Assembly: GCA_004764695.1 (NCBI GenBank)
Contig: SMSO01000037.1
Coordinates: 4,440,747 to 4,504,746, forward strand
Direction of reading: 5' to 3'
Source of the DNA: Schizochytrium sp. TIO01
Lineage: Eukaryota > Protista > Bigyra: Labyrinthulomycetes
DNA: 64,000 bases
Positions 2,822-37,300 of this stretch are shown in pieces. Made by a program: the position numbers and the translations under genes. Each line of letters starts with the position of its first letter. Within the stretch, counting starts at the first letter, position 1. The notes under the pieces are model-generated. The model was not told the DNA's origin, searched no databases, and saw nothing but the letters and a program-made list of their open reading frames with translations.

Positions 2822-3260
2822 CTGCAGAACTTTTGACTTACGCGATTTAATGATCAAGGGCTACTGAGAGAAAGTTTGTCCTTAGTGAGCGAGGGAGGGT
2901 ATCTATCTTTCGATCTTCTCTAACTGCACAACTCTCGACTTAGAAGATCGAAAGATAAGTAGTCAAACCTCTACCACTGGCGAGTCAGAGGATCGTTCTT
3001 CAAGTCTCAAACAACACTGCCTGCAGAACTCAATCAAACGATCGATCAAGGTCTACTGAGAGGACCGATCTTCAATTCTCTTCTCCTGCCTAGCACTGCC
3101 TGCACAACTCGCAACTTACGCTTGACCAAGGTCTACTGAGAGGACTGATCTTCTCTTCTCCAACCTACCGGCACGAGCCAGCACAACCTGTACAACTTTC
3201 GACTTACGCAATCAAACGATGCATGGAAAGTTGTCCTTGGCCTTAGCGAGCGAGAGCATC
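2822..3260. repeat. Degenerate modular direct repeats plus a perfect 16-bp inverted repeat in the divergent intergenic region
   Basis: CAAGG(G/T)CTACTGAGAG occurs 3 times, CTG(C/T)A(G/C)AACT about 5 times and ACTTACGC 3 times. TATCTTTCGATCTTCT (2904-2919) is the exact reverse complement of AGAAGATCGAAAGATA (2942-2957). Confidence 0.7.
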
Positions 3261-3718
3261 GATGTTACCCACTTGCATCGTATCATCACAACGTTTGACT
3301 TGCATGATCGAACAGTGGAGGGAGAGATGGGTGGAATGAGCGCGTGCACGTGCGAGGAGAGAAATAGATTCGTAGCACGCCACCAGCCACGGCATCAAAG
3401 TTATGCAAACGAGCACTGCAGACTTTTTACTTCGCGGATTCTGGGTTTCGCAAAATACTAGCACTTGAAAGATACATTATAGATCGATGCAATTTGTAAT
3501 GATTGTTTTATAATTTATCCCTCGTGCAGTGTATGAGTCATTAGAAGAAGACATGGGTTTGATTTGAGGGTGTGTAAGAAACAAATAAATAAGTAAGAAT
3601 ATCTACTAGTAAGATTCATTAGTTAATCAAGTATAAACAATAGAGGAAGCATCCAAACCTAGTTCTCAACAGCAGCAAAACCCAATCGTTCGAACACCCA
3701 AAAAATCGTTCGAACACC

Positions 3719-5257
3719 ATGTTAGGTGCTACTTTGAAGGGAGTTAGAAATGTAGCCTCCAAGATCACCAGCCAGGCAAGGAGTGCTGCTAGTAGACGTG
3801 AATCCCGCCTCTCATCAATTCAGATGTTCACAACCGATACAAACAGACTCACTCCTATGAAACACGTAGTTTTGCATCAGGAATTATCTTCCCTCTTGGC
3901 CGACGCTAGAACTTATCGTGCCAAAAAGACTAAGGAGTACGATGACACGTTAAAATCCATTACTGATCTCGAGGCTGAAAAAGCCAAGCTTTCGCAAAAA
4001 ATCGAGGATCTGAAAGAGAAAATCGCCAACAAGTTAGGACCCGATAACTACAAGTTTCTCGATGCTTTCTGCCGTGGTGAGATCAAGTCAAAATCGTTCC
4101 AGAAGAGGTACGGGTACTCGCCCGATGATATAGAGGACGTAAATATTGCCCTTTGCATTAGTTCGATGGAAGACCTTTTCCAAAAAGAAAAGTCGTTAGA
4201 AGTGACCGAGCAACAAATTCTTGCAGATACTCTCCGCCTTGCAAAAACGCAGGGCAATATCAATGATTATGATGCTGATGTGAGGAGGTTAAGTGATTTG
4301 ATTTCTCGTACGGAACCGCAACGCTTTCTGTCGTTCACCAGTGATCATCTACCAAGGATTGCTGATTCCAAGCTAGTATTTAAAAAAAACAGGACAGATA
4401 TCTCAAACCTCAAAAATTACCCCGCTTCGCCCGCGAAGGTCAGGCCTTTGTTAGTGGAGTCTTTCGTGGACTACTGTGACCGGAAAGGGTACATTGATAT
4501 TCTGAATGAACTGCAATCTACCGTCGACTTCAAGGATACCTTTGAGAGTATGAGTGATATGATAAAATTCTCAAACGAAGGAACTGTCACGGACGCATTT
4601 CAGCAGGTTATGCGTCTTGTAACAAAAGCCATGACTCAAGAATCTAACGAAAAAGTCCCTTATAAGGTCTCCATCTATACGTCTGGTCAGGAAGAAGTAG
4701 AGGGTAGAGCAGACTTTTCTTTTGCTGCTAAGAAAGTAGACCGTTCCCATATTCCGTTGATCGTAGGTGAGACGGAAGGTCCTGGTAAGGAGTACTCCTA
4801 CGACAACCTCGGTGAGACTTATTGTGATCATGGCTGTCCTGGATGTGAATCAGAACGTCATAAAAATCATTCAGTTGTTCGTCAACTATACGGCTACATG
4901 CTTTTGAATGGTCTACTGGTTGGCGTCTACTCGAACTACAAAGTGACTTGTATTTTTATCAGGGACTGTGAAGGAAATCTAATGATCACGAACTCTGTTC
5001 GGGCTGAAGAAGTTGGCGATATCGCTCGCGGCAAACTCAGTTCGATGCAACTTGTCGCACTTGCTATCTTGCTCGCAGCGGATACAAGCGAGATGAACTT
5101 CAGTGAAATTGAAAATAACATATTGGTTCCCTGTTTAGGTGGCCCTGAGATTAGTGAAGAATGTATCATTCTACCATCTGATTGCAGAGGCAGTAATAAC
5201 TTGGAAAACGACAAGCACGGAGATACTAATTCCGTGAACGTAAAGAAGCTCGGCTAA
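3719..5257 (+). CDS. Coiled-coil plus restriction-endonuclease-fold (CR-REase-like) protein; 5' part of a split REase-kinase gene
   Basis: 512-aa ORF with N-terminal heptad-rich segment and motifs GRADFSF...LIVGETE...VRQLYGYMLLNGLLVGVYSNYKVTCIF, which resemble the REase domain preceding the kinase in CR effectors. Confidence 0.65.
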   Translation: MLGATLKGVRNVASKITSQARSAASRRESRLSSIQMFTTDTNRLTPMKHVVLHQELSSLLADARTYRAKKTKEYDDTLKSITDLEAEKAKLSQKIEDLKEKIANKLGPDNYKFLDAFCRGEIKSKSFQKRYGYSPDDIEDVNIALCISSMEDLFQKEKSLEVTEQQILADTLRLAKTQGNINDYDADVRRLSDLISRTEPQRFLSFTSDHLPRIADSKLVFKKNRTDISNLKNYPASPAKVRPLLVESFVDYCDRKGYIDILNELQSTVDFKDTFESMSDMIKFSNEGTVTDAFQQVMRLVTKAMTQESNEKVPYKVSIYTSGQEEVEGRADFSFAAKKVDRSHIPLIVGETEGPGKEYSYDNLGETYCDHGCPGCESERHKNHSVVRQLYGYMLLNGLLVGVYSNYKVTCIFIRDCEGNLMITNSVRAEEVGDIARGKLSSMQLVALAILLAADTSEMNFSEIENNILVPCLGGPEISEECIILPSDCRGSNNLENDKHGDTNSVNVKKLG

Positions 5258-5270
5258 GAACTTTCAAAGG

Positions 5271-5861
5271 ATGGTGCGGCGATTCATTTACCATTATTAC
5301 AACTTGATGGGTACACTGAACTCCCTCCCACCTTGTCGCACGGGTAGAACACTTCGGGTTGATATCCCCCTACCAACAGGTGAGAAGATTGACAGCGTCT
5401 TGAAGATATTGGATTGCTTTGAGCAAGAAGAACAGCTACCAGAACTTGAACACGAAGCTGAAATTTACAGGGAGTTAAAATCGCTACAAGGCGAACACAT
5501 CCCTGAATTTATCGATTACGGCTTGTTTGATTACGATGTCCTGTACGGTCTTAGGACAAAATATTCTGGCGAACCTTTAACACCTGAAGACATTACTGAT
5601 GACTTTGTGGGAAAGGCAGTGATTGCTCTCGATGAAGTTCACTCCCATGGTGTACTGCACGGTGATGTGGAGGCCCGCAATGTCCTAGACAATAAGGAAA
5701 CTCAAAGGCCTGTCATAGTTGACTTCGGCATGGCCGTTCGCAAGATGGAAATGAGTGATGAATACTTCACACAAAGCACTAGTCGAGAGATTGCTAGACT
5801 TCGACGTGCGTTGGAGAGGGAAAGAACAACTCAAAATGAAAACATTTACAGTCCTCAATGA
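5271..5861 (+). CDS. Protein kinase-like domain (CR/RIO/Bud32-like minimal kinase); 3' part of split gene
   Basis: Motifs RTGRT (G-loop remnant), VLK, LEHEAEIY (alphaC Glu), HGVLHGDVEARNVL (catalytic loop) and IVDFG. It is separated from the upstream ORF by TAA 5255-5257 and an apparent frameshift near 5335. Confidence 0.8.
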   Translation: MVRRFIYHYYNLMGTLNSLPPCRTGRTLRVDIPLPTGEKIDSVLKILDCFEQEEQLPELEHEAEIYRELKSLQGEHIPEFIDYGLFDYDVLYGLRTKYSGEPLTPEDITDDFVGKAVIALDEVHSHGVLHGDVEARNVLDNKETQRPVIVDFGMAVRKMEMSDEYFTQSTSREIARLRRALERERTTQNENIYSPQ

Positions 5862-5889
5862 ACCAAATTAAAAACAATAAAAAAGACAT

Positions 5890-8829
5890 TTATGAAAAGT
5901 CATCAATTTCATTTGCGAAATTATACTGTGTTGCAATCTGATGAGACCTATAATAATAAACAAACCGATAAAGCACCATAAAACAGAGCAAAGAAAGTGC
6001 ACCGACTGTTAGACCTAGATAAATATGATTTGAACCAATTTGTTCAAACAGTTCCTTTAAGTAAGAAAGACTAGTATCATCTGAAATCGTTGGTGCTGAA
6101 GAAGGATTTCCAAGCGTAGGTCTCATCGTTGGTGCAGGAGTTGGAGCCGTGGGTGAAACTGTAGGTGACGATGTTGGTGCAGGAGTTACAGCAAAAAAGG
6201 TTGAAGAATAGATGTCCTGTATGACAAGAGAGTTCTCTTGTGGAGCAATAGAAAGATAACCAGTTGACCACGCCGTTGTACTGCTAATATTCGTTGGCCA
6301 AAACACGCTAATGCTTTCTGACTTCGTAGCCACAGTCGAAGAGTTAACAAGAGCAACGAACGACCACTCACCAGAGTAATCACGAGTCAGAGTATAATTC
6401 GCAGAGCTAAAGACTGGATAACCATCTGTCATAGTGCTGAAGTTATAATTCCCTGCTATACTATGATTTTCACTAGATGTTACGTAGATAGTTTCTTACG
6501 GAACAAAACAAGAGGTACCCATCGAGAGGACTTACCATTGCACCATCGCCAAGACCATCACTTTCTCCACAATAAGGGAAATCTGCACACATACATGTCA
6601 AGGAATATCCAGATTCAACTCCAGATTCACCGAGCACTGGATGTTGGTAATTGCTCGCACTCACCTCATAAGAATAGGCTGCAGAAGCAACAGAACCAGT
6701 CCCAAGAACCCACCCCTGAGTATTAAGGAAGTATAGTAAATAACTCGTATCCCGTCCATCATTAGAATATAACTCCCAAGAATCCTTTAAATCTACATGT
6801 TTACCCGTCGTTTTCATCACTCCAGTTGAACTCACGTATGGAGATTCCAGTATTAGATAAGGACAATCCACAACACAGCTAGTGCTGTTCGGTTCCGACA
6901 TCATACCTTGGCCACATGGTTCGCAAAGACCACTCGATTCATTCATAAACATATTACTACCACAGTAAATCACATCACAAACAACTTCCGCAGTAGCACC
7001 ATCTATGCCGCCCGTAATGAGAAGATAGGTACTGTCATTGGCAAAGGTGTGTACCTCAAAATTTTCAGTAAAGTATCGGGTAAGCATTTTGTAAATCTGC
7101 AGCCCGGCTTTCAGAACTGCACGCGGAGGTCCAACTTCGCGAAGAACTGGTGGTAATAGGATAAGTAAAAGCAATATTGTCCTCCGTCAGTTCGGATAGA
7201 TAAATGAGTGTGGTCGAACCGACCAATCCGTAAAACGAACCGCATGCCAAGCTGGTGCAAAAGACCCAGCAATAATAATAAATCCCACAGTACCCCATGT
7301 ACACTGATTTAAGGTACACTTCATATTGGTCATTCACATAATCAGTCCCAGCGGGTCCACTTGAGACTCCAGGAACAGCATAAAAGATCATCTCGCCCGC
7401 ATAACTTAGAAATGGAGAAACCGTTAAAGCAACATTGCAAGCATCCGCAGAACGGTGTTTAACACCGGAAACATCAAATGCCCGATTCCAATCATACAAG
7501 CTAGTCGAATTAAATGCGGTCAGGTTAAATTCTCGTTGACTATCACTAAATAGATGAAATGGTTTGCCTCCAAAAATATAAGCGTCCAGGTAGTCACCAC
7601 AAGATACATTCAAAGAAACCTTTGAAGGGTTAGGAGTTTCCAAATGAAACCATGTATGCCCCACAGCTTCTGTGTAATTCACTGTGTCGCCACAAGAAAT
7701 AGAGGTCAAATTTTGCATTTCATTCTCAAATTCATCTACATCATTGATACTGTTATTTATATGCCTTACTCTGACTTTCACGCGCTAAGTATCCTCATCA
7801 AGTTCTAAGACAGTCACCGCAACTGTATTTCCTCCCTCGCGATAATCATACACATAGGTAGAATTTACTGGGACAAAATCAGCTCCAGTTGTATCAGTCA
7901 CCAATCTGGGCAAGCCAGTTGGATCGATCAAGTAACTAGGACCTGCAATATCTTCACAACGCCTTGTTACCCATTCCAACATCACACCTAGAAGATCACT
8001 TTCATAGAGTGATTGGAATGCATGTATTTGGATACTCCAACCGATACAGAATACAGTAGTACAGAGATGAATTAAACCCCTCTCCTGTATCGTGGGCATA
8101 GAGCCACACAGTTGTATCATCACTTATACAAGACTCATCTGCTTCGCAATACAAACCATGTGACATTTGCAAAATACTCTCTTCTGGAATCCACCCCCAA
8201 AAGTACTTGTAGTAGGTACTAAATCGAGCTAACAACCACTAAGCCTTTGAACCCATTTCATCATATTCATTACCATATTCTCCATCAATAGCATGAGCAT
8301 GCAGCAAACCAAGATTGTGACCAAACTCATGCGCTAAAACTCCCATGAGATAAGCGGTTGAATTCACTGAACTTGCAGCAACGTTCATATGCAACCGAGA
8401 ACCAACAACATAAGCAACCCCAACATACCCCAGGTTACAATAAGGGGTGAACAGAGCAACAGAGTCATATGTAGACGCATTTGCACTATCTTCCGCGAGA
8501 GCAAAAGCATCTTCATAAACAAGCATGCTACTCGAAGTCACCTCTACTCCATTGATGTAACAATTATCTGATTCATCAATGCTAAAAGATTCCATCACAT
8601 AGGTAGTCTCATCAACCGATAAGTGAACATCAAAACTACCACCAGAACTTGAGTAATAGAACGTACTCAAATCGCTGCCTATATCGGCCATGATCTCATC
8701 ACTCGGAACCAACGAAGAGTAGCTGCTGTTGGGTATAATTCTGACCGCTCGAATTGTATCTGTAGTCACACCATTGCTATAAGTGCTCGCATCAACAAAT
8801 CCAACAATCAAAACCAAACACCGCATCAT
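5890..8829 (-). pseudogene. Disrupted type I membrane metzincin metalloprotease (peptidase M11/gametolysin-like), ~975 aa when reconstructed
   Basis: Signal peptide MMRCLVLIVGFVDA, zinc motif HEFGHNLGLLHAH, EYGNEYDEMG (Met-turn), Cys-rich segments, a PT-rich stalk and a C-terminal TM (IYLGLTVGALSLLCFMVLY). Six consecutive ORF pieces are joined by in-frame TAG at 8239-8241 and 7785-7787 and by frameshifts near 8030, 7070-7170 and 6495. Confidence 0.8.
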
Positions 8830-8920
8830 TCTTTCTAATAATAAGTAATCTCATTGCTTTTACTTTATATTGCCAGCGCAAAATAACATAGGTGCAAACA
8901 ATTTCAACCAGTTAAAATAA

Positions 8921-10168
8921 ATGTTAATTGTCAATGACATTGTCTTCTCTCATGAAATCTGGAACTGGTATGCTGAAAGGAAACAGAACGTTAACCTTAC
9001 ATGCTCACAAAAATGGTACCTACATGCATTGAGAAGCTTTTTACCCAAACAATACTTCCCAAATCAGTTTTCACAAATTATTCTCCAGGATTTAACAACC
9101 GCAGAATTTTGGGAAATTCTCAATATCACATTTTACACATAATCTGATCTCCAACATAATGACAACGACAGAAGAATGCCAACAAATGTTAGTATCCAAT
9201 CCATTCTAAGCGAGCTACAACACATTGAGGCTATGATTGTATTTTGAGCAATCACAAAAGACCACACAAAAGAGAAATTAGAACTTCCAAATATTGATTA
9301 TTCCCTCATTGTTAATGAAACAGGATTAAACTTGAAGTTCGCAGCCCAGCATGATTAATAGTTGCTTCGAATCCGTTTCCAAATGTACTTCCATTTTACC
9401 ACTTCACGCACCACCAGATCACATTGCTACAACTTTGAGACGGCAAACCATGCCATCCAATAAAAATGAGTTTGGCTCTCGTCACGATCATTTGATGAGT
9501 TTTTGAAAAATATCATTCGCGTAGCCTATGGTGGTGACCTCGACGAATACATCGACGCAGTCATTGAAGACATTGAATAAAAAAAAATAGGCAACTTCCA
9601 CGAAACCCTTGCCCGAATTAAAGGTTACGAATTGATGGATCAGAAAGATGTTCCAACAAAGTTACCTCCTAGCGAATCCTGGCGAAGGCTTTTCAATACA
9701 TACTTTGACAAGGAAGAAAACAACTTTGAAATGTTCTATCAGACATTTACTGCTGAATATATTTTCTTTATCCTCAAAGATTACCTCGCAATCTATGATA
9801 ATGATGGAATCTCATATCTACCGATTTATAAACTCTATTCCAATGACCACTTTACACAGACTTACTGTACAAATATAAGATTTCTTATAAAATACTAAGA
9901 AAATAAGAAGTCAGCTTAAAAAATTATACAATATTAGAATTTGATTCATCAAAAACCTTAATTTGTTACAGACATGTTCATTCAATCGGAGAAAATTCGA
10001 AAATTCATTCAGAATCTGTTCCGTCAGAAAAATGAACATGTCGTCATTCAACGCAGAAACGCTATGTCTAATGAAGAAGCTATATCCTATTTCTACCACC
10101 ACGACAAACCACTCATCACATACAAAGACATTAAACATAAAAACAAGACCACTAGCCGTCACCGCTAG
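8921..10168 (+). pseudogene. Decayed gene of unknown function
   Basis: ORFs 8921-9142, 9632-9898 and 9974-10168 share one frame. The intervening sequence translates to protein-like text (e.g. FDEFLKNIIRVAYGGDLDEYIDAVIEDIE*KKIGNFHETLARIKGY) interrupted by many stops. Confidence 0.5.
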
Positions 10169-23580: not shown

Positions 23581-26138
23581 TTAAGCATGTATCAGCTTCG
23601 TAGCGCAAAAGAACGAAAGAACGAAAGAACGAAAGAGGTGCTGCAGGGAACGCCTAACGGGTGCTTAGTAGGTCCTACCGGCGGGATGTTGGATGCATGG
23701 TATGATGAAAGCAGCTTTGAGCACATTTTAATTTACTCTGTTTCTCTGAGCAAACTTTGTTTTGTGACGGTGGATTCGATAGATGTCATGATAGCGCTCT
23801 TCTGGCGATGTGGATGAGGGTCTTTCGCTCCTCTCGCTCAACCAACGAGGGTGTTCTTTCGTTCTTCTGAGTGCGCTCACTTGATAAGCAAACAAACCAA
23901 GCAACCCTTTTTCATAGTGCTGAGGAAGAGAGAGCTATCTCTCTCTCTCGCTGCCTCTGTCTCTGCTTTCAGTCAGAAAGCGCGGCGTCCATGAAAGGGA
24001 GGGAGAAAGGAAAGCTCTGCAGAAGAAGTAAGTGATCAGTGAGCGGCCAACGCGTATCTCCGCGAGAAGCGAAGAAGAGGACCTTCCTTCTCAACCGACA
24101 GGCGCCAGGCGTGAAGGTTCTTTCTTTCTCTTCGATCAGTGAGAGCTCTCAGATAGCGAGTGAGTGCTCTGCTGAGTCATCTACCGAGAGTTTCGTTCCA
24201 AGGAAGCCTGTAGCACTACGCATACAGTCCGCGCCTCATCGAGTAGAAAAGGAGAATTAATTTATTGAAGAATTAATTAATTCATTGATTGATTGACTGA
24301 TTGACTGATTGACTGATTGATTGATCGATAAGTTAAAACTTTATGGTGAAATACTTATTTGTTTAATTATTAGTTAGAATTGAACGAGCGATGAATTATG
24401 TATCACATATTGGCACTTTTTGTCCTTCTGCTCTTCAGAGGTGAGGTGACTGTGCGATTGTAGTGGCCTCCTATCCTAAACAGTAGGCAGCGCCAGGAGC
24501 GTGTCAGGAGGCTGGAGTCAGCAACAGTGCTTCCTCTGAAAGCTAAGAGTTCGAGCTGCTCTCTCTCTTCTATCAACAGCAAGGCCCTCCCTCCCTCCCT
24601 CCCTCATAATAGTCCTCATGTTCTCTCTCTCTCTCTCTCTCTCTCAGAGTCGCCGTCAACACAACTCGAAGCAAAGAACAAGCAAAGGAACAAGCAAAGG
24701 CAAGCAAAGAACAAGCAAAAGGAAAGCAAAGGAAAGCAGAAGCTGCCGAGAGGAGGGAATATGAGGCTGTGATTGGCGGGTTGGACGACCATGGAGCGTT
24801 GAACACTTGGGCTGAGAAGGAGGAGGAGAAGAGCAGGAGCGAGCGAGTGGGCGGGCGCTTTCGAGGCAGGAAGGGAATGGCGGCGCGAGAAAAGATGTGA
24901 AGGCATGAAGGGAGGCACTAAAAGATACCGTGTTATACTGTAAAGAGGTAGTCAAGCAGGCCTTCCTTTCTTTCTTTCTTTCTTTCTTTCTTAGTGTCTT
25001 CGATCGATTGAGGAAACTTACCATCACATCGCAACTTGCTTCATTATTTTTATTATTATTGAAGATTTATTATTTTAACAATAAAGTAGTATGTATACAC
25101 AGCTGGTTTCAATCAAGTTTTAACCTTGTTTAATAAACATCAGCAGAGAGAATGCCTCTGAGTTTTCGAGTTCGCTTCTTTGAAAGCTACGCTTCCTCCT
25201 CTTCTTGCGTTTACAAGGTCTCTTTTAATTAAAAGAAAGGGAGGATGGAGGAAAGGAAAGCAGGTAATGAATGACAGGCAGGAATCAACAGATAGGAAAA
25301 GGGGATCAGGAACTCTCAAGTGTTTCATTTCAACCTTCTTCTCTTTTTACATAAATAAATACTTATTTAGAAAGAGCAGCAGAATGAAGGATTGAGAGGA
25401 ACAGGATGGTATAACCTATAGTAGGTACCTTTTGCCCACTTCGAAATACCGTATAGTCTACTGTGGCTCCCGCTTTAGGCTACTTAAGGTCACGTACCCA
25501 CCCCACCACGGAACAAAGCAGGACAGGAAACGGAGGGAGGGGGGGGGGCAGTCTGGAGAGTGAGCTGAGAAATAGAGAGCTCTGACTTTATTCAGACACA
25601 GGTGAAAGCAGCAGCACTGAGCTGCGAAAACAGACGGAGAGACCTTCAATACTTCTGTTTGTTTTCCATCAAAGAAAAATATCATTCAAGCTCAAGTTGG
25701 TTTTAGGAGAGCAAGATAAGAATAGAATATTTTTAATGCTTTTGACATTGTTACTGTTATTGTTATTATAATTAAAATGTAAAGAAGGGTAAGAAGAAGA
25801 AGAAGAAGAAGAAGAAGCGCTCATAGGTCAAGGGGCGCGATGAATGAATTGAAGTGATGTCTTCTTCTTCTCGCTCTCGATTGCCTTCCGGTGGCTCATA
25901 AAGGGGTGTTGGACTTTGGGAATTTGTTTACGAAGTTGCTTATTATCAAACTATTTTACTCTTGGTTTCACTTCCTTCCTTCCTTCCTTCCTTCCTTCCT
26001 TCCACCTGATGGAATGAATAATAGATATGCTTTACGAATCATTCAAACATTTTTTAAAATGTTTTTAATTTAAAGTATAAAATCTTCTGAGATAAAAAGA
26101 AAGTTTCATTCACTCACTCACTCATTCATTCATTTGAA

Positions 26139-26250
26139 TTGTTTGTTTGTTTGTTTGTTTGTTTGTTTGTTTGTTTGTTTGTTTGTTTGTTTGTTTGTTT
26201 GTTTGTTTGTTTGTTTGTTTGTTTGTTTGTTTGATTGTTTGTTTATTTGT
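26139..26250. repeat. (GTTT)n microsatellite
   Basis: Direct reading. Confidence 0.95.
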
Positions 26251-27248
26251 TTATTCCATAAGAGGAATGAATGAGTACGTAGGAGTGGATATTGAATTGT
26301 TACTGACGATCGAAAAGCAATCGAATCAAACCAAACAGAATAATAGAAACAGCGAAGAAGAGGCGACCAAACCCTAGGCAGCGCGCGCAGCAGCCGACGC
26401 ACGCAGGCACGCACGCACGCACGCAGGCCCGCGCGGACGCAGCAGCGACACGCCAGGAAGACTGCTCGACAGCCAGCCAGGGCGGAGCCCAGCCGTCTGG
26501 CCCGTAGCCAGGGAGTAAGCGGGGGAGCGGGAGAGCGGCCGCGGCATTGACCGATTGAACTCGCGTCTGCTCTCTTTTGTTTCTCTTTGTTTTTCCTTTT
26601 CTCTTTTATTGGTCTTTCTCTCTCTTTCTCTCTCTTTCTTTCTATTTGTCTCGTCTCTTCTTTGTTGTTGTTGTTGAGCCGCTCTGCCTGACGACTGAGT
26701 CTAGAAGCAGAAGCACAAGCTCCAGGACTGGGAGGACGAGGACCTGAGCGAGTGCGAGCACGGCCCCACCTCGCTGGACCGCTCAGATACACCGGCCTAG
26801 CTTGCAGAGTTTGCTTGCTTGTTTCTTTCTTTCTTTCTTTCTCTCCTTTCTAGTTAATCTTCGCGGAGCGGGGTTTGGCTTTGTTTGCTCTGCGTCGCCC
26901 TAGCTGCCGGCACTTGTGAGCCTGCTTGTGAACTATCTCGCTTGCCTTCGTGAGCAAAACAGCATACGCTCTTTATATACCTTGCGAAGCACCGATCTTC
27001 GTGGCTCTCTTGACAGCTCAGGGCCGATTTATCCCCAGGAGTTCTCTATCTCTATCTCTATCTATCTCGCTCGCTATATATACACGTACATATATATAGA
27101 TAGATTTGAGATTGGTATCGCGTTCGGACAGATCAACAGAAGCACAACCCACTTATCGTCTAATTTGTGTAATAGCGTGGACTAGTCCCAGGAGGGAAAA
27201 GGATCTGGACAATTTCATCTCGGTATAGTTAACAACTCTATAACCAAA

Positions 27249-27394
27249 ATGTGGGGAGGATCACAGCACCCGCAGCAGCACCGGCAGAATAGCGCCGGCA
27301 GCAATAACAGCAATAACTCGGGAAACAACATGATGATGCAGGGAAACAACAACCTTCGTATGCCAGGAAGCCAGGCAGACGTCATGTTGCAACA

Positions 27395-27425
<31 letters not shown>

Positions 27426-29234
27426 CAGCAAGGCGGACACAATCAGCACCACCACCACCAACAACATCACCACCAACAACAACAACAGACATGGTTTCCG
27501 GACCCAGCCATTCTGCAGGAGCTCCGCGCCCGCGGACCTGGTCAGTACAGGATTCAAATGAGGACCTTTGAGCCCGGTTTCGGTATGAATGGTGCAATGC
27601 AGCAGCACCCCGGTATGGCAATGGGCCTTATGAACAGGGATTCTAACTTTCAATCACAGTCCAATAACAATCCCGGTGGAATGACCAACGGAGGACTCGC
27701 ATCCTCGTACATGAACCAGGCATCCATGAACCAAGACCCGATGCGACAGATGCAGCAGCAAGTCGGATATCCTGGCGCCATGCAGTCCATGCACCCACAC
27801 ATGAACCCTCAAATGCAGCAACAGCTGCAGCAGTGGCAGGCCGCTCAAATGGCAGCCGCGCAGCAAAACTTCCTGGCCCAAAACGGCATGTACTCTGTCG
27901 ATGTCGTTCGCAACCAGTCCATGGGCGCCGATGTCTTCCTGATCCAAGCCGGTAACTTTGCGGCCTTCCCCATGCAGGCTAAAAAGTCGAGGAAGCGCCG
28001 CCAGCGTGACCCTCTTGCTCCCAAGCCTGCCCGGTACGCATGGAACTTCTTTTTCAAAGAGCACTACAAAAAAATCCGCAACAAGAACTATGGCGGAGAA
28101 CATTTTGACGTGCAGAAGGCGTTCACTGATATCGGGCACAGCCTCGGAGATAAGTGGAAGGCACTAACAGCAGAGGAAAAGGAGCCCTACATTAAGATGG
28201 CCCAAGATGATAAGAAACGCTTTGAGCGCGAAATGAAGGAGTACACCAGCGCCCGCAGCGGAGACCGCGGTTCGGATGACGACGAGGATGATGATGCCAG
28301 CAACGCAGATGAGGACTCCAGATCCCCGGACAGTGCCGAAGAAGCCACAGCTGGCGTTAAGACCGACGCAGACTCCAAGGATATGGAGAACCCACGTCCT
28401 TCGAAGAAGTCTCGGCGCAGCAATAAAGCAGCAGAGGAAGACGAGGACAACGAAGAGGCTCTCGCTACAGACCCGAGCACTTCTGATCTCGTCAAAGCAG
28501 CACTACTTGAAGGGTCCGCAGAAGTGGACGGGCTCAAGATCAACATCATTCGACCTGGCGAATCTGCACCGACGCCTCCGCCTAACATGACGGAAATGAC
28601 AGCCGACGTTCTCGTTACTGATGATGACGAAACCTTCATCGTCATGATGTCTGCCACTTTACGCAAACTCCATGTCAAGGAAGGGTATCAGAACCTCAAC
28701 ATTCACGTTGCTCACAACGGAGAGGAGGCTCTCAAGAAGATCGTTGACGAGAAGCAGCGATTCGCAGTGGTTACCATGGATAAGTATATGGGCGAGATGG
28801 ACGGTGTCGAAACCGTTAAGAAGATGCGCGAGGCTGGGTATGACGGGTGCGTCGTAGGCGTCACTGGAGATGAGTCTGGCATCGGCAGTGAGTTTGAGAA
28901 GGTTGGCGCTGACACCACCCTGTACAAGAATCAGAGCGGCCTTTTCTCCCAAGTGCACAGTATTATTGTTGAAAAGCTTTCTGGCAAGGAGAACGAGAAC
29001 GAGAACTCAGATTCTGATGAAAAGGATGCGGACGATGACAACGATAAAGACGCAAAATCTTCTTCTGACAAAGAAAAGTCCAGCAAAAGAAAACAAGCAG
29101 ATGTGAAGGATAACTCTCCTTCTGCTAAGAAGTCAAAGGACGATAGCGGCAAAGATAGTGGTACAGAAGAGAAGGACAAGAAAGTGTCCTCTTCTGTATC
29201 TACTTCCGCAAAACCTGTCTCGGCTGCAACCTAG
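27249..29234 (+). CDS. Q/N/M-rich transcription factor with HMG box and response-regulator receiver (REC) domain
   Basis: 661 aa. PolyQ/H N-terminus and basic NLS-like KKSRKRRQR. HMG box DPLAPKPARYAWNFFF...GDKWKALTAEEKEPYIKMAQDDKKRFEREMKEY (28008-28244). REC domain VLVTDDD...AHNGEEAL...VVTMDKYMGEMDGVE...VVGVTG...GADTTLYK (28605-28980). Confidence 0.92.
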
Positions 29235-30893
29235 GGCCTACAGAGATCCCAGAATTTGCTTTGGTAGGTAAGTGCGCACACTATCGCCCAATTTTTGCCA
29301 CTTTCCCACGTATATCTACTAGTACTTCTTCTTCTTCTTCTTCTCTTATGTCCTCTTTTGTTCTCTTTCTATATAGTCTGCAATTGCCCTCCCTCCTCTC
29401 ACACTTCTCTTTATTCCCTCCCGCTTCTGCTCTCAATCCCTGCCAAGGCCAAACAGTCTCTTATTTCTTCGTATTTGGTTTTGTCTTCAACACATAAATG
29501 ACGAACTCGACTGTTGAGTGATGTTTTTAACGAAAACGAAATCACTCAAGATGAAATATTCAGCCTCATGGGAAAGGAGTCTCACTAAGAATATGATCCA
29601 TCATGCCAGCAGAAGCGTTGGTACCCCAAGTAACCACTCCTTTTTTTTCACATCCACTCTCGTGTCTACTTTCTCTCTCGTCAGATGAAATATAGACTCA
29701 TCCACACAAGCAAACAAACATACAAACGTGTGTTCATTGGTTGTTAGCTAGTTTGTTTTTCTAGTTGATCAACCCGTGCGGGTTCTTCTCACTTCCCACA
29801 CATGTTTTCGACTTGCTTGCCGATGCCTGCTCTCGTGATAATGTAGATGCTGAGATATTTGCTTTTGCTCGGGCAGCCGCCTCGCAAATGCATCCATGGT
29901 CACCCCAACTCACGTCATTAATATTCCTTCAATGTAGCCAAATTTTGCCTTCTGTCAAGGCTATTTGGAAATGGGAAAAGGGCAGCCTGAATTTTTTCCT
30001 TGCAGTCCCTATATACCTACCCTCTTGGCTGCTTCTGGTCCTGACCATTTTTTCTCAACACTCTGCTTTTACTTTGTCCTTGTCTGACGACAAAATCAAC
30101 GTCTGGAACTGACACCTACTATGGTTTTTGAGTTTTGCCTGTTTTGCCACCCCGCGCACCTTTTAATGCATTCTTTGCTCTAGGGTTGGTGTAGTCCTAT
30201 CTGATTGTGTTGCGATTGGCCTGTTCGTCTTTCATGCTCTTGCAAAAACCTATACGTGTACTGGTAAATTTTACATTATCGTACTCTGCTTTTCTTTATA
30301 CTTTTTGTTGCTTTCTTGCCATTTCTTGGACAGACCAAATCCGTTCACAGCCATTTCTCTAATTCTAGTAAAGTTATGGACTAGATTTTCTCCTTTTAGC
30401 TGTACAGGTGTCTCTTCACCAACACCAAATTAATTTATGGGACATTGTCTCAAGCAGTTTTCAATTTCAACAACAAACAAAATAACATTGATTCTGCGAT
30501 TCTATATGTAACTGGATTGTGGGCTCTGAGTCCTTATGTGAAGGCTCGTAGTACCACGTCTTCCACAACCATCCTTCTATAATCTGTGGTTAGCAACTGG
30601 TTAGTACTTGGAGGGAAAGAACTATAAAACTTTTCCTTTTCTTTTTTTTGATACAAAAAATAGCCGTTGATAGTCTAGCGGTCGGTATTGCATTAATCAA
30701 GCTTGAGATCGCTTGTTTGAGCTCTACTTGAGGTGCCTTGGCAAGTGAGCAGGACTTTGACGTTGCCCTGTGTCTATGCAAGCTCTGTTCTAGCGCTTGC
30801 TTGTGTCCCCAAAACATACTAAAATCTGAGCAGGAGCACCTAGAAGCTCCACTGCAAAATAATCACCAATTACCTGAGCAGCCAATCGCAACC

Positions 30894-33164
30894 ATGCAAG
30901 CTGCGCAACTCCAAGGCCTCGTGACGCTTGTGCCAGAGCATGAGAAACACGAACATTACAGAGATATTTATCGTGTTCTTGACCAAAAAGCGGAGAATAA
31001 AGTGAAGGCCGAAAGTAGAGCTTTAAAGCGAGGAATTCGTGAGCGCCGTCATCATCAGTCACCAAAGCAATGTAAGACAGATAAAAACCTCAAAAATACT
31101 GCTGCTATACAGCTTGAGATTATAGCTAATGGAATTAATCCTCAAAACCAAATTAAGAAAAACGTACAAACACTGAGGAAGGACTACCTAGAGAAATATT
31201 CTTATGAAACCAAGGTTGCAGAAGACGATTTTATTAGTAGTGATGACGAGTCTGCACTTGACATGGCTCTTTATGAATACCATGATTGTAGTAGCAATGC
31301 CTCTGAATCACCCAGTAGGATGAGCCACAGCAGTGAAAGTACTATCAAATCTTCCCAAGATGAAGACAATGAAGAGGTCGAGGAGAACGAGGACAGGCTC
31401 CTTGATTTATTTGCAAAGCAATTACAACTTGAACAAGACAAACGTTTCAAGGCAGAAGTTCGCCAGGAAGAAGAGGCTATTGTCAAATATATATTAGCTC
31501 TTGAACAAGATCGAGATGCCAAGGTGAAGGAGATTGTTAAGCTTCAGCAAGAAAACCGTCGCAACGAGGCTCGTTCATTGCGACGTCAGCGTGCATCACG
31601 GGCCTATCAACAGAAGCAACTTGCACGTCAAGCCTGGCATAAATCTGATGACGAAGACTCAGATGACTCATCTCTTAGTAGCAGCAGTAGTAGCAGCAAC
31701 GAGAACGACAGTGACGAGAACTACTCGACTTACTCCTATAGTGGCAGCACATTGAAAAGGAATAGGCAGTTGACAAAACGTTTAGCAACCACCAGCTCGT
31801 TGATTAGTGGTCAATCCTCTTCAAGCGAACGACGAGAACGACGTATGAGAGCTTATGAGGAAGAGCTTCGGGCACGGGAAGAAGAGGAACTTGCAGAGAC
31901 CCGTGTACGATTTAAGGCTCGCCCTGTCCCTGTCAGCACATTATTACCAAAATATAATGAAATCAGAGAGCTTGCCGAAGCTCGATCTCTAGCACGCAAA
32001 TTAGATCGACAAGCAAGACTCGACGACCAACAGTGCCCCTTCTCAGCCCTTGACAAGCGCACAAACTCATGGATCGAAAGACAGAAGAAGGAAACGAAAC
32101 TGGCAAAAGGTGAGAACCGTCCTCGTAAGAACTCGATGTGTAACCAGGATCAAGATTTTTTTGCTATGCATAAAACCCAGAAGAAAACAATCAACTTAAA
32201 TGATGCTCACTTAAGCTTTACAGAACGTCAACAGAAGGAAGATCGTGAACGCCGAGCTCGTTGTGACCGCCGTGCACAACAGCTCTTGCGCGAGAGCCGA
32301 CTTCCCCGGCGAATGGAATTTCATGATATGTATAACGGCAAAACAGCAAGCGCAAGAAGAACAACTTATGATAACACATGCACGTTTCAACCCAACGTAA
32401 ACACCCGAGTCCCTGATTTCGAGGCCAGTAAAGACCGGTGGGTAAAGACTTTGGCTAACGCTAGACGCAAGCAAAAACCAACACAACCTGATGTCTCTGG
32501 TCTAAGTATGTTTAGTGATGAAGCAAAGACACGGGAAGATCTGCGAAAGGCCCGCACAGCAGCAAGGCTTGCCGCAGAAGAAGAGTCGAATGCACGCGAT
32601 AAACGGAAAATGGAGAACTTAGTAAAACGAGTTCAATCTCAAGCGACACGACGCCCTACCACCGTAAATATGACCAAGTCCCAGGAATTGAGACTACGCC
32701 AGTGCGCAGAAACCAAGGCTGCAGAACAAGCCAAACGCCAGCGTGAGGAGGCACGACGCAAATTACAAGCAGAAAGACTAAGAGAAAGATCCAAGGTCAT
32801 CCGCGCAATGGTAAACGAAGCGGAAGAGACTCGTCGACAGTCATCTGCAGGATACACCAGCCTCGAGGATGCAGCACGAAAAGCCAAAGAGCGAGCTGAG
32901 CAGGACAAGCTCGCATGGAAACAACGGCGTCGCGAGCTTCGAGATAAAATGAGTAACCCTCGCCCCGACAGGCCCGCCTTAATTGAGCGTAATGGGGAAG
33001 CTAAGCGCCTTCAAGACCGAAAACAAGCTGCATTGGCACGAGTTGCTGCAACCTTGCACAACGTAGATCAAGAAGATTCCCATAATGCACTCACCCAAGA
33101 TGAGTTGGATCTTGTAAAAGAAACCATCATCAACGACCAGCTTGTGAATGACTACCTTGCGTAG
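30894..33164 (+). CDS. FAM161-like (UPF0564) coiled-coil centriolar/ciliary protein
   Basis: Long charged coiled-coil ORF (track start 30738 is TTG; first ATG is 30894) with FKARPVP...LPKY...PFS and TFQPNVNTRVPDF motifs characteristic of FAM161A/B. Confidence 0.7.
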   Translation: MQAAQLQGLVTLVPEHEKHEHYRDIYRVLDQKAENKVKAESRALKRGIRERRHHQSPKQCKTDKNLKNTAAIQLEIIANGINPQNQIKKNVQTLRKDYLEKYSYETKVAEDDFISSDDESALDMALYEYHDCSSNASESPSRMSHSSESTIKSSQDEDNEEVEENEDRLLDLFAKQLQLEQDKRFKAEVRQEEEAIVKYILALEQDRDAKVKEIVKLQQENRRNEARSLRRQRASRAYQQKQLARQAWHKSDDEDSDDSSLSSSSSSSNENDSDENYSTYSYSGSTLKRNRQLTKRLATTSSLISGQSSSSERRERRMRAYEEELRAREEEELAETRVRFKARPVPVSTLLPKYNEIRELAEARSLARKLDRQARLDDQQCPFSALDKRTNSWIERQKKETKLAKGENRPRKNSMCNQDQDFFAMHKTQKKTINLNDAHLSFTERQQKEDRERRARCDRRAQQLLRESRLPRRMEFHDMYNGKTASARRTTYDNTCTFQPNVNTRVPDFEASKDRWVKTLANARRKQKPTQPDVSGLSMFSDEAKTREDLRKARTAARLAAEEESNARDKRKMENLVKRVQSQATRRPTTVNMTKSQELRLRQCAETKAAEQAKRQREEARRKLQAERLRERSKVIRAMVNEAEETRRQSSAGYTSLEDAARKAKERAEQDKLAWKQRRRELRDKMSNPRPDRPALIERNGEAKRLQDRKQAALARVAATLHNVDQEDSHNALTQDELDLVKETIINDQLVNDYLA

Positions 33165-33839: not shown

Positions 33840-34337
33840 TTAGCTGCTGTAGAGGTCGGAGACCTGGGCAGAGACCTTGGGCTCGTCACCGGTGAGGTCG
33901 AGCTTGTAGACAAACTGCTCAGGGAGAGGCTTCTCGTTCATCTCGCCATCAGCGCTCTCGAAGTTGAGGTTCATCTCAGAGCTCTTAGCAGCGATAACCT
34001 GGAAATCAGTGTTCTCCTGGGTCTCTTTGCTCATGTAAATCTGGCAGCCGTCGGTCTTGTCAATAGCAACGGAGTTAAGGCGAGCACCAGGCTTCATGAT
34101 GATCTTGACGCGCTGGCAGTTGGAGACCTCGACGGTGGACATGACGGAGTCAACCCAGAGCTCGAGCAGGGTGCAGTTGTCGACCTGCACGGAGTTGCAC
34201 TTGCCGTTGATCTCAACCTTACCGTAAGATCCCTTCTCGCCGCCACACTTGTAGACGGAAACGCTCTTGCGCATGGAGTCCACATCAACGGAGGCCTCCT
34301 TCTTGTTCTCTACGGAAAGCAAGTTGGCGGAGTTCAT
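33840..34337 (-). CDS. Stand-alone C-terminal domain of cyclase-associated protein (C-CAP / CARP beta-helix), G-actin binding
   Basis: 165 aa from ATG 34337: INGKCNSVQVDNC, SVAIDKTDGCQIYMSKE, AKSSEMN, EKPLPEQF. Strongly biased codon usage suggests high expression. Confidence 0.88.
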   Translation of the reverse strand: MNSANLLSVENKKEASVDVDSMRKSVSVYKCGGEKGSYGKVEINGKCNSVQVDNCTLLELWVDSVMSTVEVSNCQRVKIIMKPGARLNSVAIDKTDGCQIYMSKETQENTDFQVIAAKSSEMNLNFESADGEMNEKPLPEQFVYKLDLTGDEPKVSAQVSDLYSS

Positions 34338-37300
34338 TTTTCTTGAAGGGTGCTGAGGATACCTGGAGTCAACTGCGAACGAAGACGAAGCGAGCGAGCG
34401 AGAGCTGCTTAGGAGATTGGTATTCTGGCCGCGATGGAGATACGGGATTGGATCGAGTCGAACACACGAAATCAAGAAATCACTCGCTCATCAAACTGAC
34501 TCACCGATGAGCAACAAACTATTCCTATATAACAATATAAGCGCAAAATATTCTTTCAAGTTCTTTCTTACACTTCTTGCACACGTAGATATCTTCAGGA
34601 TGTGGATGGATTCTCATGTTGATACTATTTATTCGCAAATCCTCATCGCCTTACGAGAGCCTGCCTTCAGACTCGACCTCATCGCAGTCAATCCTCCCGC
34701 CGCATCGGCTCGCATGCAGAGCTGCGGATAGCAATGAACCTGCGACGATGGGATCGTTTCGGAGGGATCCAATCGCGGCAAAATCATCAGTTTAGCAAAA
34801 CTCATCAAATGAATCTAATCATGTTTTCCTTCCTCAGACTGACTCACCCAGGCACATCTACCCTAAACCACTAGGACTCCCTACGCCACATCAAAGATAA
34901 CTTTTCATCGTAAGTCTGAAAAGGATTTAGTACTCTACTTCTTTTACACACCTAAACCACAATTGCTCCTAGTGTTACCTATAGCCACACCATAGACAGT
35001 CCTCATAAAAATAAATGTGCAGACTGAAAAGAAATACGAAACTTGAACCTCCGGCTACTTCTAAAGGAACCCCCACTCTTCACATGTGGTCTGGGACCGC
35101 ATGTGTATATTAGGGGTGTATTGCGAGTTTTAGATGACAATAAAAGAACACCCCGCGGCGGACAGTTGCTTGTGCAAATTGTTGATGATGCCTTGGAATG
35201 TTTACACGCGAAATGAAGCGATTATGAAGAGCCTCCAACGAAGAGCAGACAACAGGCCCCACCGAAGCCATGGCTCGGGACAGGAATCAGCCAGTTTGGC
35301 GGACGGCTGGCCTGCCGGGAATGCTACAGCTGAGAAGGAAGCCCAAAGCTAACTCGTCGTACCTCACTCCGGGTCCCTTTTTTATCCTATATTACATTTT
35401 ATAAACTATATTTATATACTAATCAGTCAATTATAGGAAAAGATGCCACGTGGGCAATGTTGGTCCCACGGTACCTACGACTCGGTACCAGTAGATTATG
35501 AGAGAGTGCCGCTTCTGTTTTGCGTTGACCTCCCACCATGGACTATCTTGAAATGGTATCCTAGGTAGGCATGCCATGATGAACAGGTTTTAATGATAGT
35601 AGTGGTGGGGAAAGTGGCGCGAGAATCGGACGCCCAAGGACGAATGAAGGTTGTGAAGGATCGTTTCGCTTGCTTGTTGCGTTCTTGCTTTCTTGCTAGA
35701 AGGCTAGAAGGCTGACATACTCAAAAGTTCAACTGAGGTAATTTCGAGTCCAACATGAGATGCCAAGTGGTCATTGTGCGATAGAACTTGAAACAAGCGA
35801 TAGGGGAATTCGAAACCAACTACGATGAACCTAGTCGAAAAGCAACCAAAGTTCATCTTCGACTTTGTGCTCGATCACTGGATTTGGGGGGGGGCACTTA
35901 GAAACAATGAAGCAGAAGGGATCCCCATGCATATGCTCTTATGAAGGGAAAATGTCATTTGCTAGAACTCGTCAGCTCTATTTCTATATCTACTCTTTGA
36001 GTGTAGCCCTTCCAATCATTGATTGTGCTGTGAAGAACGCTCAACGTTTGTAGGAATAGGTTCTAAAGAGTATACCTCTCAGGAATTAAGTTTCCTTGCT
36101 CACAATCGTACATAGTTAGGAAAGGATCATCAACGTATTCGAGAGCTAAACGTATGTTTGTTGTGGTCATCATATAGCAGCTGTAGCCGGGGAGCGCGAG
36201 ATTGCATTCAACACGTATGTACGTTCAAGCTTTGTAAAATCAATACCATTGCTAAGATTACAAGTCCCAACGTCAGCAAGCATGTACACACGGCTATTGA
36301 TTTAGAGGTCAGAACGCATGTCGTCAAGCTATACTCAAGATCAAATACAGTAATTGTAAAAGTCCAACCAAGCCACCCGAGGCGAGCTGTCACACATCCA
36401 AATTTAAACCTAGGATATATTTCCCATCGCCAGCCCGCATATGCGCTGCTCAATCCCTGCCAATCACCTTCCGGACGTCCGGAAGGTCAGTTCTAAATTC
36501 ACCAACTTCGAGTTGAAGATACTCCCTAATTGCTGGGGAAGCCAACCCTGCCAGTAGCATACTTCGTCTAAACCTTCAACAATCATTGCACTTCCATGAC
36601 GGTCATTCTGTCTTGCACATAGGTTTGCGTTGCAATGAACTATTCCTTCACAGCTTGTCTCTTGGAAAGTTTATCGAAACTACAATGTGCGAGTTCTCCT
36701 CCGATCGTCTCCGCGGATGGGTCAAGAAAACTGCAAGCGTGCTCGTATTCCCCACAGAGTGCTTCCGCCTACCTTGACCGTCACGAATTATTATTTGGAG
36801 CACAACAAAGATTCATCTTGACCTTTCCCGTGACACATGTTTCATGAAGAGATGTCTACTTTCACGCGTAGGTACTTTAGGTACTTTCATATGCGCACGT
36901 ACCAGACATTTGAGGCGAGGATGTCGATCAACCTTAAAGGTCGTCCGCTCCCATAGTTTCCACCTTGAAGAAAGGAAACGAATTTCGCAAGAAATATCGC
37001 TCCCCAAAGGAGCTCTTCTAGGCAAGTTAGCTTCGAACCATGTAGAATGATGTAGTAGGCATGCAAAGAAAAGAGCATCGAAACCCCAAGCCATCGCCTT
37101 TAATTTGTCTCGAGCTTTCGATCCTTTGCTCCCTAAAGTCACCATGGAGTAATTGCATAATACGTCCAAAACAAATTAGGCACTATGATTTAGTGTAGGA
37201 GGACGCTAGTCGGGGACCCCCTCTGTTAAATTGAATACTTGCGGGTCTTATATAGCAACTAGTGACTCCTAATGTCGTGGAGAAAGTTTCTTTTGTTTTT

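Follow-up and report, generated by a model that had tools for sequence, protein, structure and literature searches.

An HMG box joined to a receiver domain in a probable phosphorelay response regulator of Schizochytrium and other Labyrinthulomycetes

We analysed a stretch of 64,000 nucleotides from the labyrinthulomycete Schizochytrium sp. TIO01 (GenBank assembly GCA_004764695.1, contig SMSO01000037.1, forward-strand positions 4,440,747 to 4,504,746; hereafter the window) and found a gene that encodes, in one uninterrupted frame, a high mobility group (HMG) box and a response-regulator receiver (REC) domain. The product, here called the HMG-REC protein, probably acts as a true response regulator in a multistep His-Asp phosphorelay of the eukaryotic type, with the HMG box as its output, its phosphorylation and its DNA binding being predictions. 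To our knowledge few DNA-binding outputs of eukaryotic phosphorelays have been characterised, and the known kinds are the fungal Skn7, with a heat shock factor (HSF) domain, and the Myb-type B-ARRs of plants. The first-pass annotation of this DNA, a reading of the letters alone, knew of no characterised HMG-REC regulator, and our search of the open-access full-text literature, in which absence is not proof, likewise turned up neither a description of a fusion between HMG box and receiver nor an account of response regulators in Labyrinthulomycetes. On its predicted domains we regard the protein as a eukaryotic response regulator that is peculiar to its lineage and has an output domain new to such regulators; members of its family are already present in public databases.

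Results

Gene and domain layout

The gene is an open reading frame (ORF) of 661 codons on the plus strand, at positions 27249-29234 of the window, with no stop within 1,983 bases. Its start codon stands in the context AAAATGTGG, with A at -3, and the orthologue from Hondaea fermentalgiana (P0002) is likewise 661 aa long, is collinear with the HMG-REC protein and also begins with 'MW'. From N to C terminus the protein consists of a Q-rich region, a basic arm, the HMG box, an acidic linker, the REC domain and a low-complexity tail (Table 1). The first-pass annotation had read the same succession of Q-rich region, basic patch, HMG box, acidic linker and REC, and Pfam matches and composition place all of these in the one ORF; the receiver residues it had picked out (TDDD, TMD, Thr, Lys and the N that follows) were all exact when we recomputed their coordinates. 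The domain and residue matches are far beyond chance, and the genome has the combination in a single copy.

Conservation was read from two family alignments, one of 10 sequences forming the core group (mean column identity 39%) and one of 19 sequences (28%). Structures were predicted with AlphaFold2 (AF2), which was run on residues 240-585 with the family alignment and a second time on the full length; confidence is given as the predicted local distance difference test score (pLDDT).

Table 1. Features of the HMG-REC gene and protein, of its neighbourhood and of two hybrid kinases elsewhere in the genome. Positions are those of the window unless a contig is named.
Feature	Position	Strand	Basis
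Whole HMG-box/receiver gene, single exon, 661 codons + stop	27249..29234	+	ORF list; collinearity with Hondaea orthologue P0002
Q-rich low-complexity N-terminus, residues 1-244	27249..27980	+	23% Gln; mostly disordered by prediction
Poly-Gln run from (GCA)14 repeat	27389-27430	+	Tandem-repeat search
Conserved N-terminal motif 1, residues ~100-128, W.PDP..L..LR..G.GQYRI	27546..27632	+	Core-group alignment; several members match sub-HMM
Conserved N-terminal motif 2, residues ~210-240, GMYSVDVV.N...GA.V	27876..27968	+	Core-group alignment, sub-HMM
Basic arm, residues 245-257, KKSRKRRQRDPLA, net charge +6	27981..28019	+	Charge; alignment to Nhp6A
HMG box, residues 258-335, three helices, signature PKPARYAWNFFFKE	28020..28253	+	Pfam PF00505/PF09011, AF2
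Acidic Ser-rich disordered linker, residues 336-446, net charge -17, 28% D/E	28254..28586	+	Composition; pLDDT <50
REC (CheY-like) domain, residues 447-580, full (beta-alpha)5	28587..28988	+	Pfam PF00072, AF2, Foldseek
Acidic metal-binding pocket D458-D459-D460, end of beta1 ('TDDD')	28620..28628	+	Alignments
Predicted phospho-acceptor Asp511, end of beta3 ('TMD')	28779..28781	+	Aligns with YycF phospho-Asp (phmmer)
Thr539, Thr/Ser across family, end of beta4	28863..28865	+	19-sequence alignment: GVTG, GVSG, GISG, GITA
Lys560, end of beta5, then Asn561 in place of usual Pro	28926..28931	+	Alignments
C-terminal low-complexity tail, residues 581-661, Ser/Lys/Asp/Glu-rich, KRK and KKSK patches	28989..29231	+	Composition; disordered
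FAM161A/B-like protein (basal-body/cilium family), downstream	30738-33164	+	E 2.3e-15
CAP_C/TBCC-domain protein, downstream	33840-34475	-	E 5e-32
Hybrid kinase with N-terminal ETR1_N	C31:7408000-7413000		E 1.4e-16
Second hybrid kinase with N-terminal ETR1_N	C24:5589000-5593500		E 5.9e-14

The HMG box and its basic arm

Pfam assigns residues 258-332 both to HMG_box (PF00505; 43.8 bits against a cut-off of 25.4, E 3.5e-11) and to HMG_box_2 (PF09011; 49.3 bits against a cut-off of 22.4, E 8.3e-13). The three helices are predicted by AF2 at residues 264-279, 288-305 and 308-337, with a helix pLDDT of 82-96, and, unlike in Nhp6A and HMGB1, an insertion of 7 residues separates helix I from helix II. 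Core-group members keep the signature almost unchanged, and divergent members depart from it only slightly.

The top solved relatives in a PDB sequence search were Nhp6A (E 7.8e-15), then HMGB1 and NHP1. All 27 solved relatives with E <=1e-3 are non-sequence-specific proteins (Nhp6A, HMGB1/2/3, NHP1 and SSRP1), with no SOX, SRY, LEF or MAT box among them. Phe292 is invariant and aligns with Phe48 of Nhp6A, while Tyr263 aligns with its Ser26 and Asn266 with its Met29. We take Phe48 and Met29 of Nhp6A to be intercalating wedges, and the Ser26 position to be diagnostic of class, with Asn in SOX-type boxes. At this diagnostic position, number 10 of the box, Tyr263 is neither the Ser of HMGB proteins nor the Asn of SOX proteins. 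Both Tyr263 and Asn266 are at least 90% conserved in the ten closest relatives and variable in divergent members. Overall the box appears to be HMGB-like, yet with a DNA-contact surface of its own.

The basic arm, which contains the patch KKSRKRRQR (residues 245-253), aligns with RKKKDPNAPK of yeast Nhp6A, the DNA-binding N-terminal arm of that protein, and a K/R-rich stretch followed by RDP is kept in most of the family. The first-pass annotation had called this patch similar to a nuclear localisation signal; the basic patch is there, it aligns with a DNA-binding arm, and it may also act as such a signal. The same annotation spoke of an HMG-box transcription factor. The HMG box stands, and the role as a factor is not established, because by sequence the box is of the non-sequence-specific Nhp6A/HMGB1 type. 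Since Nhp6A and HMGB1 are its closest relatives, the HMG-REC protein may be a signal-controlled architectural cofactor instead of a classical sequence-specific factor. A housekeeping HMGB identity was rejected because small HMGB-like genes exist separately in the genome, where 14 or more HMG-box matches are spread over about 10 genes, among them a small two-box HMGB-like ORF.

An unlikely alternative, one with several observations to recommend it, is that the protein is a sequence-specific HMG factor like those of the SOX/MATA class, through which the phosphorelay would govern decisions on mating or the life cycle. Its Q-rich N-terminus resembles an activation region, no other receiver protein found in the genome has a DNA-binding domain, and the family has an invariant DNA-contact signature, PKPARYAWNFFF, which is unlike generic HMGB boxes and could encode specificity. 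However, the solved relatives are non-sequence-specific without exception, Tyr263 stands where sequence-specific boxes have Asn, and a basic arm before the box with an acidic stretch after it is the layout of HMGB and Nhp6 proteins. The gene shows no link to mating. Given a box that resembles Nhp6A/HMGB1 more than SOX/MATA factors, and neighbouring genes that are unrelated, neither sequence-specific action nor the suggested part in mating or the life cycle finds support.

The receiver domain

Response_reg (PF00072) matches residues 454-561 with 43.2 bits (cut-off 30.2, E 5e-11), and the same receiver scores 47.3 bits in the genome-wide scan; NCBIfam gives partial matches only, which cover the receiver portion of numerous bacterial regulators and hybrid kinases. 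AF2 models the domain with five strands and five helices at pLDDT >90. When this model was compared with the PDB by Foldseek, Sln1 receivers ranked first, from Candida albicans (8phx) and from yeast (2r25 and 1oxb, with Ypd1), 2r25 being the complex of the Sln1 receiver and Ypd1 with Mg/BeF3. Another high-ranking match, 8pdc, is the receiver of Chaetomium hybrid kinase 6 bound to a histidine phosphotransfer (Hpt) protein, and further matches were CpxR, PhoP, Spo0F and CheY. The matches to Sln1, CpxR, PhoP, Spo0F and CheY have probability 1.00 and a target-normalised TM of 0.7-0.83, and the top ones, to Sln1, CpxR and PhoP, have E ~1e-8. By sequence, the relatives of the receiver in the PDB are YycF, PhoP and CheY, and the ESM Atlas, searched with residues 240-585, returned only generic bacterial single-domain receivers (0.89-0.90).

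The residues of receiver catalysis are kept throughout. Asp511 and Asp460 are invariant in both alignments; Asp458 and Asp459 are at least 90% conserved in the 19 sequences, and all three pocket residues (D458-D460) are invariant in the 10. Lys560 is invariant in the 10 sequences and at least 90% conserved in the 19, and every aligned family member has Thr or Ser at position 539. The DG at the start of alpha3 and the alpha5 motif L..Q[VI]......EK are conserved as well. The receiver had been described as apparently phosphorylatable, and with its acidic pocket, Asp511, Thr539 and Lys560 present and conserved this description stands as a prediction of phosphorylation.

A cis-Pro after the conserved Lys of REC domains is common, not universal. 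Related hybrid-kinase receivers likewise have a residue other than Pro there, mostly G or N. Four hybrid-kinase receivers of the same genome (HK409, HK773, HK670 and HK673) have Gly after the Lys and share the pattern R..GY.G.I.GVTG with the HMG-REC receiver. Because receivers of the genome's own hybrid kinases have the non-Pro trait too, it is a trait of the subfamily and no argument against function.

Pseudo-receivers are known in eukaryotes, for example the plant PRRs, and the receiver might in the same style be an unphosphorylated dimerisation or docking module on an HMG-box chromatin protein. We consider this quite improbable. Retention of the DD, D, T/S and K residues in about 27 homologues at 28% mean identity is hard to explain without selection on catalysis, and the genome holds a complete relay with an Hpt protein. 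The non-Pro residue after Lys560, which together with a non-aromatic switch position in the core group would favour a pseudo-receiver, is also found in the genome's own hybrid-kinase receivers, and these must be phosphorylated to relay. Also in favour of a pseudo-receiver, the divergent member P0030 has lost the Lys and reaches only 26 bits on the REC sub-profile, Pfam finding its HMG box alone. We rejected the reading because the catalytic residues are conserved.

Components of a His-Asp relay in the same genome

The genome (64 Mb, 37 contigs) was scanned in six frames and exon-blind, so that the domain counts are lower bounds. There are at least 18 Response_reg loci, 14 of them in hybrid kinases with HATPase_c and 4 outside kinases. 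A search for HisKA gave 8 loci, with a strong HisKA match in 8 of the 14 hybrid kinases. As inputs these kinases have ETR1_N, of the ethylene-receptor type, in two cases (Table 1), a PAS_2-GAF-PHY phytochrome in one and PAS domains in several. Ethylene-receptor homologues in Labyrinthulomycetes have been noted in a review (PMC6944256). A single Hpt gene was found, an ORF of 186 aa with a PF01627 match of 37-38 bits and the phospho-His motif AHSIKGSS. The first-pass annotation had proposed looking in the genome for hybrid kinases and Hpt proteins, and the 14 hybrid histidine kinases and one Hpt are what this search returned.

The four receivers outside kinases belong to a REC-PAS protein, a REC-IQ-SAM-ankyrin protein of more than 2,000 aa, a 243-aa REC protein and the HMG-REC protein. 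Of the four, the HMG-REC protein alone contains a DNA-binding domain that can be recognised; in the small receiver proteins the N-terminal half matches nothing in Pfam and could conceal a domain of unrecognised kind. The six-frame scan found no Skn7-type protein (HSF-REC), the three HSF-domain genes lying far from any REC match.

Two of these relay proteins have features of their own. The phytochrome hybrid kinase (C24:2858500-2864000, ORF 1450-4887, plus strand) is a protein of 1,146 aa with a PAS_2-GAF-PHY photosensory core in a non-photosynthetic protist. The REC-IQ-SAM-ankyrin protein (C34:2363000-2372999, 3841-9921, minus strand) is unusual in architecture for a response regulator, and its frame exceeds the stretch that was fetched.

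Disordered regions and conserved N-terminal motifs

The linker between the box and the receiver is unconserved in sequence and varies from 20 to 140 residues across the family, and its net charge is negative in 29/29 members (-1 to -18, with 16-41% Asp+Glu). Every complete member has a net positive HMG box, and the receiver is net negative. For the HMG-REC protein the charges are +10 for basic arm and box together, -17 for the linker and -8 for the receiver.

Gln makes up 14-23% of the N-terminal region in most core-group homologues that have a full N-terminus and less, 5-18%, in the divergent group. Motif 1 of this region folds weakly in the full-length AF2 model, as a helix (86-94) and a strand (100-104) with pLDDT ~70. 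In motif 2, Val217, Asp218 and Gly226 are almost invariant in the 10-sequence core-group alignment, its sub-HMM scores 16-61 bits in 16/23 two-domain proteins, and full-length AF2 predicts a beta hairpin with low confidence (pLDDT 50-59). The Pfam scan gave no match, and full-length AF2 no confident fold, for either motif; the two are possible docking motifs. The C-terminal tail is unconserved in both length and sequence across the homologues.

One Hpt for 14 kinases and few receivers is an arrangement in which the protein could serve as a phosphate sink or nuclear anchor for the Hpt, its receiver vying with the other response regulators for phospho-Hpt and its HMG box merely an unregulated chromatin tether, and sinks and competition in such layouts are known from bacterial and yeast relays. 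The lack of any interdomain contact in the AF2 models would suit such a role. We judge it very improbable all the same, as the deep co-conservation of the box-linker-receiver order and of the HMG contact signature argues for joint function of the two domains, and the conserved Q-rich region and N-terminal motifs would be superfluous in a sink.

Family, taxonomic range and receiver tree

An exhaustive family-profile search of 1.84 billion cluster representatives gave 11,616 matches, the best 150 of which were examined; 29 proteins had E <=1e-30. Domain sub-profiles found both box and receiver in 23 fetched proteins (about 20 distinct clusters), and Pfam itself finds both domains in the divergent members P0014, P0017 and P0022. 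A second word search, started from divergent P0157, turned up 8 further HMG-REC proteins, all metagenomic, and added five new two-domain proteins. The number of distinct homologues with both HMG box and receiver comes to about 27, from genomes, transcriptomes and metagenomes. Their database names miss one domain or the other, as in 'HMG protein-like NHP1', 'HMG box domain-containing protein' and 'CheY-like chemotaxis protein'.

The closest homologues are from the Labyrinthulomycetes Hondaea fermentalgiana, Mucochytrium quahogii and Aplanochytrium. The Hondaea orthologue is 56% identical by BLASTP, 63-64% identical in the alignment, and is named 'High mobility group protein-like NHP1'. The Mucochytrium quahogii and Aplanochytrium (MMETSP0954) members are MMETSP transcriptome proteins (P0003 and P0156). 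Because these two come from transcriptome assemblies, both domains lie on a single mRNA in these relatives, which disposes there of the first-pass concern that separate transcripts might carry them.

Judged by these comparisons, the fusion is real and is conserved in Labyrinthulomycetes. An artefact, in which adjacent genes or an assembly join were read as one ORF, has nothing in its favour beyond the long disordered linker between the domains and was rejected as next to impossible, since no stop occurs in 1,983 bases and independent genome, transcriptome and metagenome sequences of several genera keep the same domain order. As far as seen among the best 150 of the 11,616 profile matches, the range is Labyrinthulomycetes plus environmental sequences, and independent fusions of HMG box and REC elsewhere that score below about 85 bits would escape this set.

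In a maximum-likelihood tree of 49 receivers, the root of which is arbitrary, one clade holds 17/19 family receivers (support 95/80), with P0018 and P0030 standing beside it without a resolved position. A clade of hybrid-kinase receivers (support 100/97), made up of HK409 from the same genome, P0099 and P0080, a hybrid kinase with many PAS domains, falls in the family's group, and this wider grouping has a support of only 89/71. The receiver therefore appears to belong with those of eukaryotic hybrid kinases, in agreement with a fusion born within this lineage. The first-pass annotation had supposed independent evolution, and the tree agrees: because the receiver groups with those of hybrid kinases from its own lineage, the fusion would have arisen independently of Skn7.

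Three further observations concern the receivers of the tree and the genome. P0004 is an HMG-REC protein of 439 aa labelled 'Non-histone chromosomal protein 6, partial' and assigned to the dinoflagellate Durusdinium trenchii; it lies inside the thraustochytrid clade of the REC tree as sister to the query gene plus Hondaea (99/88), and is probably a thraustochytrid contaminant of the Durusdinium trenchii assembly and not a dinoflagellate gene. Hybrid kinases occur as two tandem pairs, HK862/HK1074 and HK670/HK673, at C31:4936000-4948100 and C34:3858500-3866500; these look like local duplications because their receivers group in the tree, those of HK670 and HK673 as sisters (99/92) and those of HK862 and HK1074 in the same subclade. 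The hybrid-kinase receiver closest to that of the HMG-REC protein, with 36% identity, is at C13:2198627-2199097 in a 409-codon frame with an in-frame TAG beside the match; the short frame may reflect an intron or a truncated gene model.

Discussion

A proposed relay

We propose that the hybrid kinases, with their two ethylene-receptor-type, one phytochrome and several PAS inputs, would autophosphorylate, and that the phosphoryl group would go from each kinase to its own receiver and from there to the His in the AHSIKGSS motif of the single Hpt. The Hpt would then hand it to Asp511 of the HMG-REC protein, presumably in the nucleus. Support for this transfer is indirect and structural: the best matches of the modelled receiver (2r25, 1oxb and 8pdc) were solved with Hpt proteins.

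The output is the least certain step. Phosphorylation of Asp511 would act as a switch on the receiver's conserved alpha4-beta5-alpha5 face. The acidic tail of HMGB1 masks that protein's own boxes, and the switch might in the same way alter how the acidic linker and receiver mask the basic arm and box. Dimerisation, which would pair two HMG boxes, is an alternative or added effect. DNA binding and bending would thereby come to depend on phosphorylation, and the Q-rich N-terminus might turn this into a change of transcription or chromatin. This specific output mechanism, a phospho-switch of DNA binding or bending, is a conjecture that we hold loosely. The broader proposal, that the HMG-REC protein is a third kind of eukaryotic DNA-binding response regulator beside fungal HSF-REC and plant REC-Myb, invented independently by Labyrinthulomycetes when a receiver of their own hybrid-kinase type was fused to an Nhp6/HMGB-like box, and that it is the common nuclear output by which phytochrome, ETR-like and PAS kinases control chromatin bending and transcription through released acidic autoinhibition, is put forward tentatively as one slightly less likely than not.

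Several points weigh against a regulator of this kind. The protein's phosphorylation, its place in the nucleus, its binding to DNA and its target genes are predictions. The receiver has Asn561 and not the usual cis-Pro after Lys560, and at the position of the CheY aromatic switch (K-3) it has Thr557, which is variable in the family. Tyr263 and Asn266 occupy unusual DNA-contact positions of the box, so that DNA binding could be altered. The census of REC domains is a six-frame lower bound. AF2 gave no confident packing between domains, either for residues 240-585 or for the full length (predicted template modelling scores of 0.44 and 0.34), so that the ideas of autoinhibition and dimerisation draw on charge and analogy only.

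Comparison with known regulators

The closest functional counterpart is fungal Skn7, whose defining HSF domain is missing here. The HMG-REC protein resembles Skn7 and Prr1 in its N-terminal DNA-binding domain, in its C-terminal canonical receiver and in the hybrid kinases that would feed it through a single Ypd1-type Hpt, and its receiver is structurally nearest to the fungal Sln1-type receivers that dock Ypd1. It differs from them in its DNA-binding domain, which is a winged-helix HSF domain in Skn7 and Prr1 and an HMG box, with no Pfam HSF_DNA-bind match, in the HMG-REC protein. The Skn7 layout also includes a coiled coil, whereas the HMG-REC protein has an acidic disordered linker.

Type-B ARRs are likewise phosphorelay outputs that bind DNA and have a Q-rich or acidic activation region. 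As long as their receiver is unphosphorylated it keeps the output domain inhibited, and we propose a mechanism of this sort for the HMG-REC protein. In contrast to the N-terminal receiver and GARP/Myb domain of the type-B ARRs, the HMG-REC protein has a C-terminal receiver and an HMG box, with no Myb match.

Nhp6A and HMGB1 are the best sequence relatives of the box and have parts of its surroundings, a basic arm before the box in Nhp6A and an acidic stretch after it in HMGB1; the second intercalating Phe of Nhp6A is also kept (F292 = Nhp6A F48). These two proteins lack a receiver and a Q-rich region, however, and the HMG-REC box differs from theirs in the 7-residue insertion, Asn266 and Tyr263.

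Bacterial regulators of the OmpR/PhoB and NarL types also place a DNA-binding domain under the control of a phospho-Asp receiver, and in sequence the HMG-REC receiver resembles YycF, PhoP and CpxR. Compared with these regulators the HMG-REC protein has the reverse domain order, a eukaryotic chromatin-type output and a long disordered linker, and kinase input, which is direct in the bacterial systems, would come through the Hpt.

If the proposal is true, eukaryotes recruited a receiver switch of bacterial type to a chromatin-architectural domain at least once more, and the protein would be a natural example of DNA bending controlled by aspartyl phosphate. For the ethylene-receptor-like and phytochrome kinases of thraustochytrids it is the most probable end-point in the nucleus. 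As thraustochytrids are transformable industrial producers of docosahexaenoic acid, the hypothesis is directly testable.

Neighbouring sequence

The FAM161-like and CAP_C genes downstream (Table 1) are functionally unconnected to the HMG-REC gene. Upstream, about 0.6-1.1 kb from the gene, lie a (TTGT)28 microsatellite and CT-rich repeats (window 26139-26252 and 26570-26661), and the program-listed ORFs over these repeats, at 26130-26792 and 26147-26377, are repeat artefacts.

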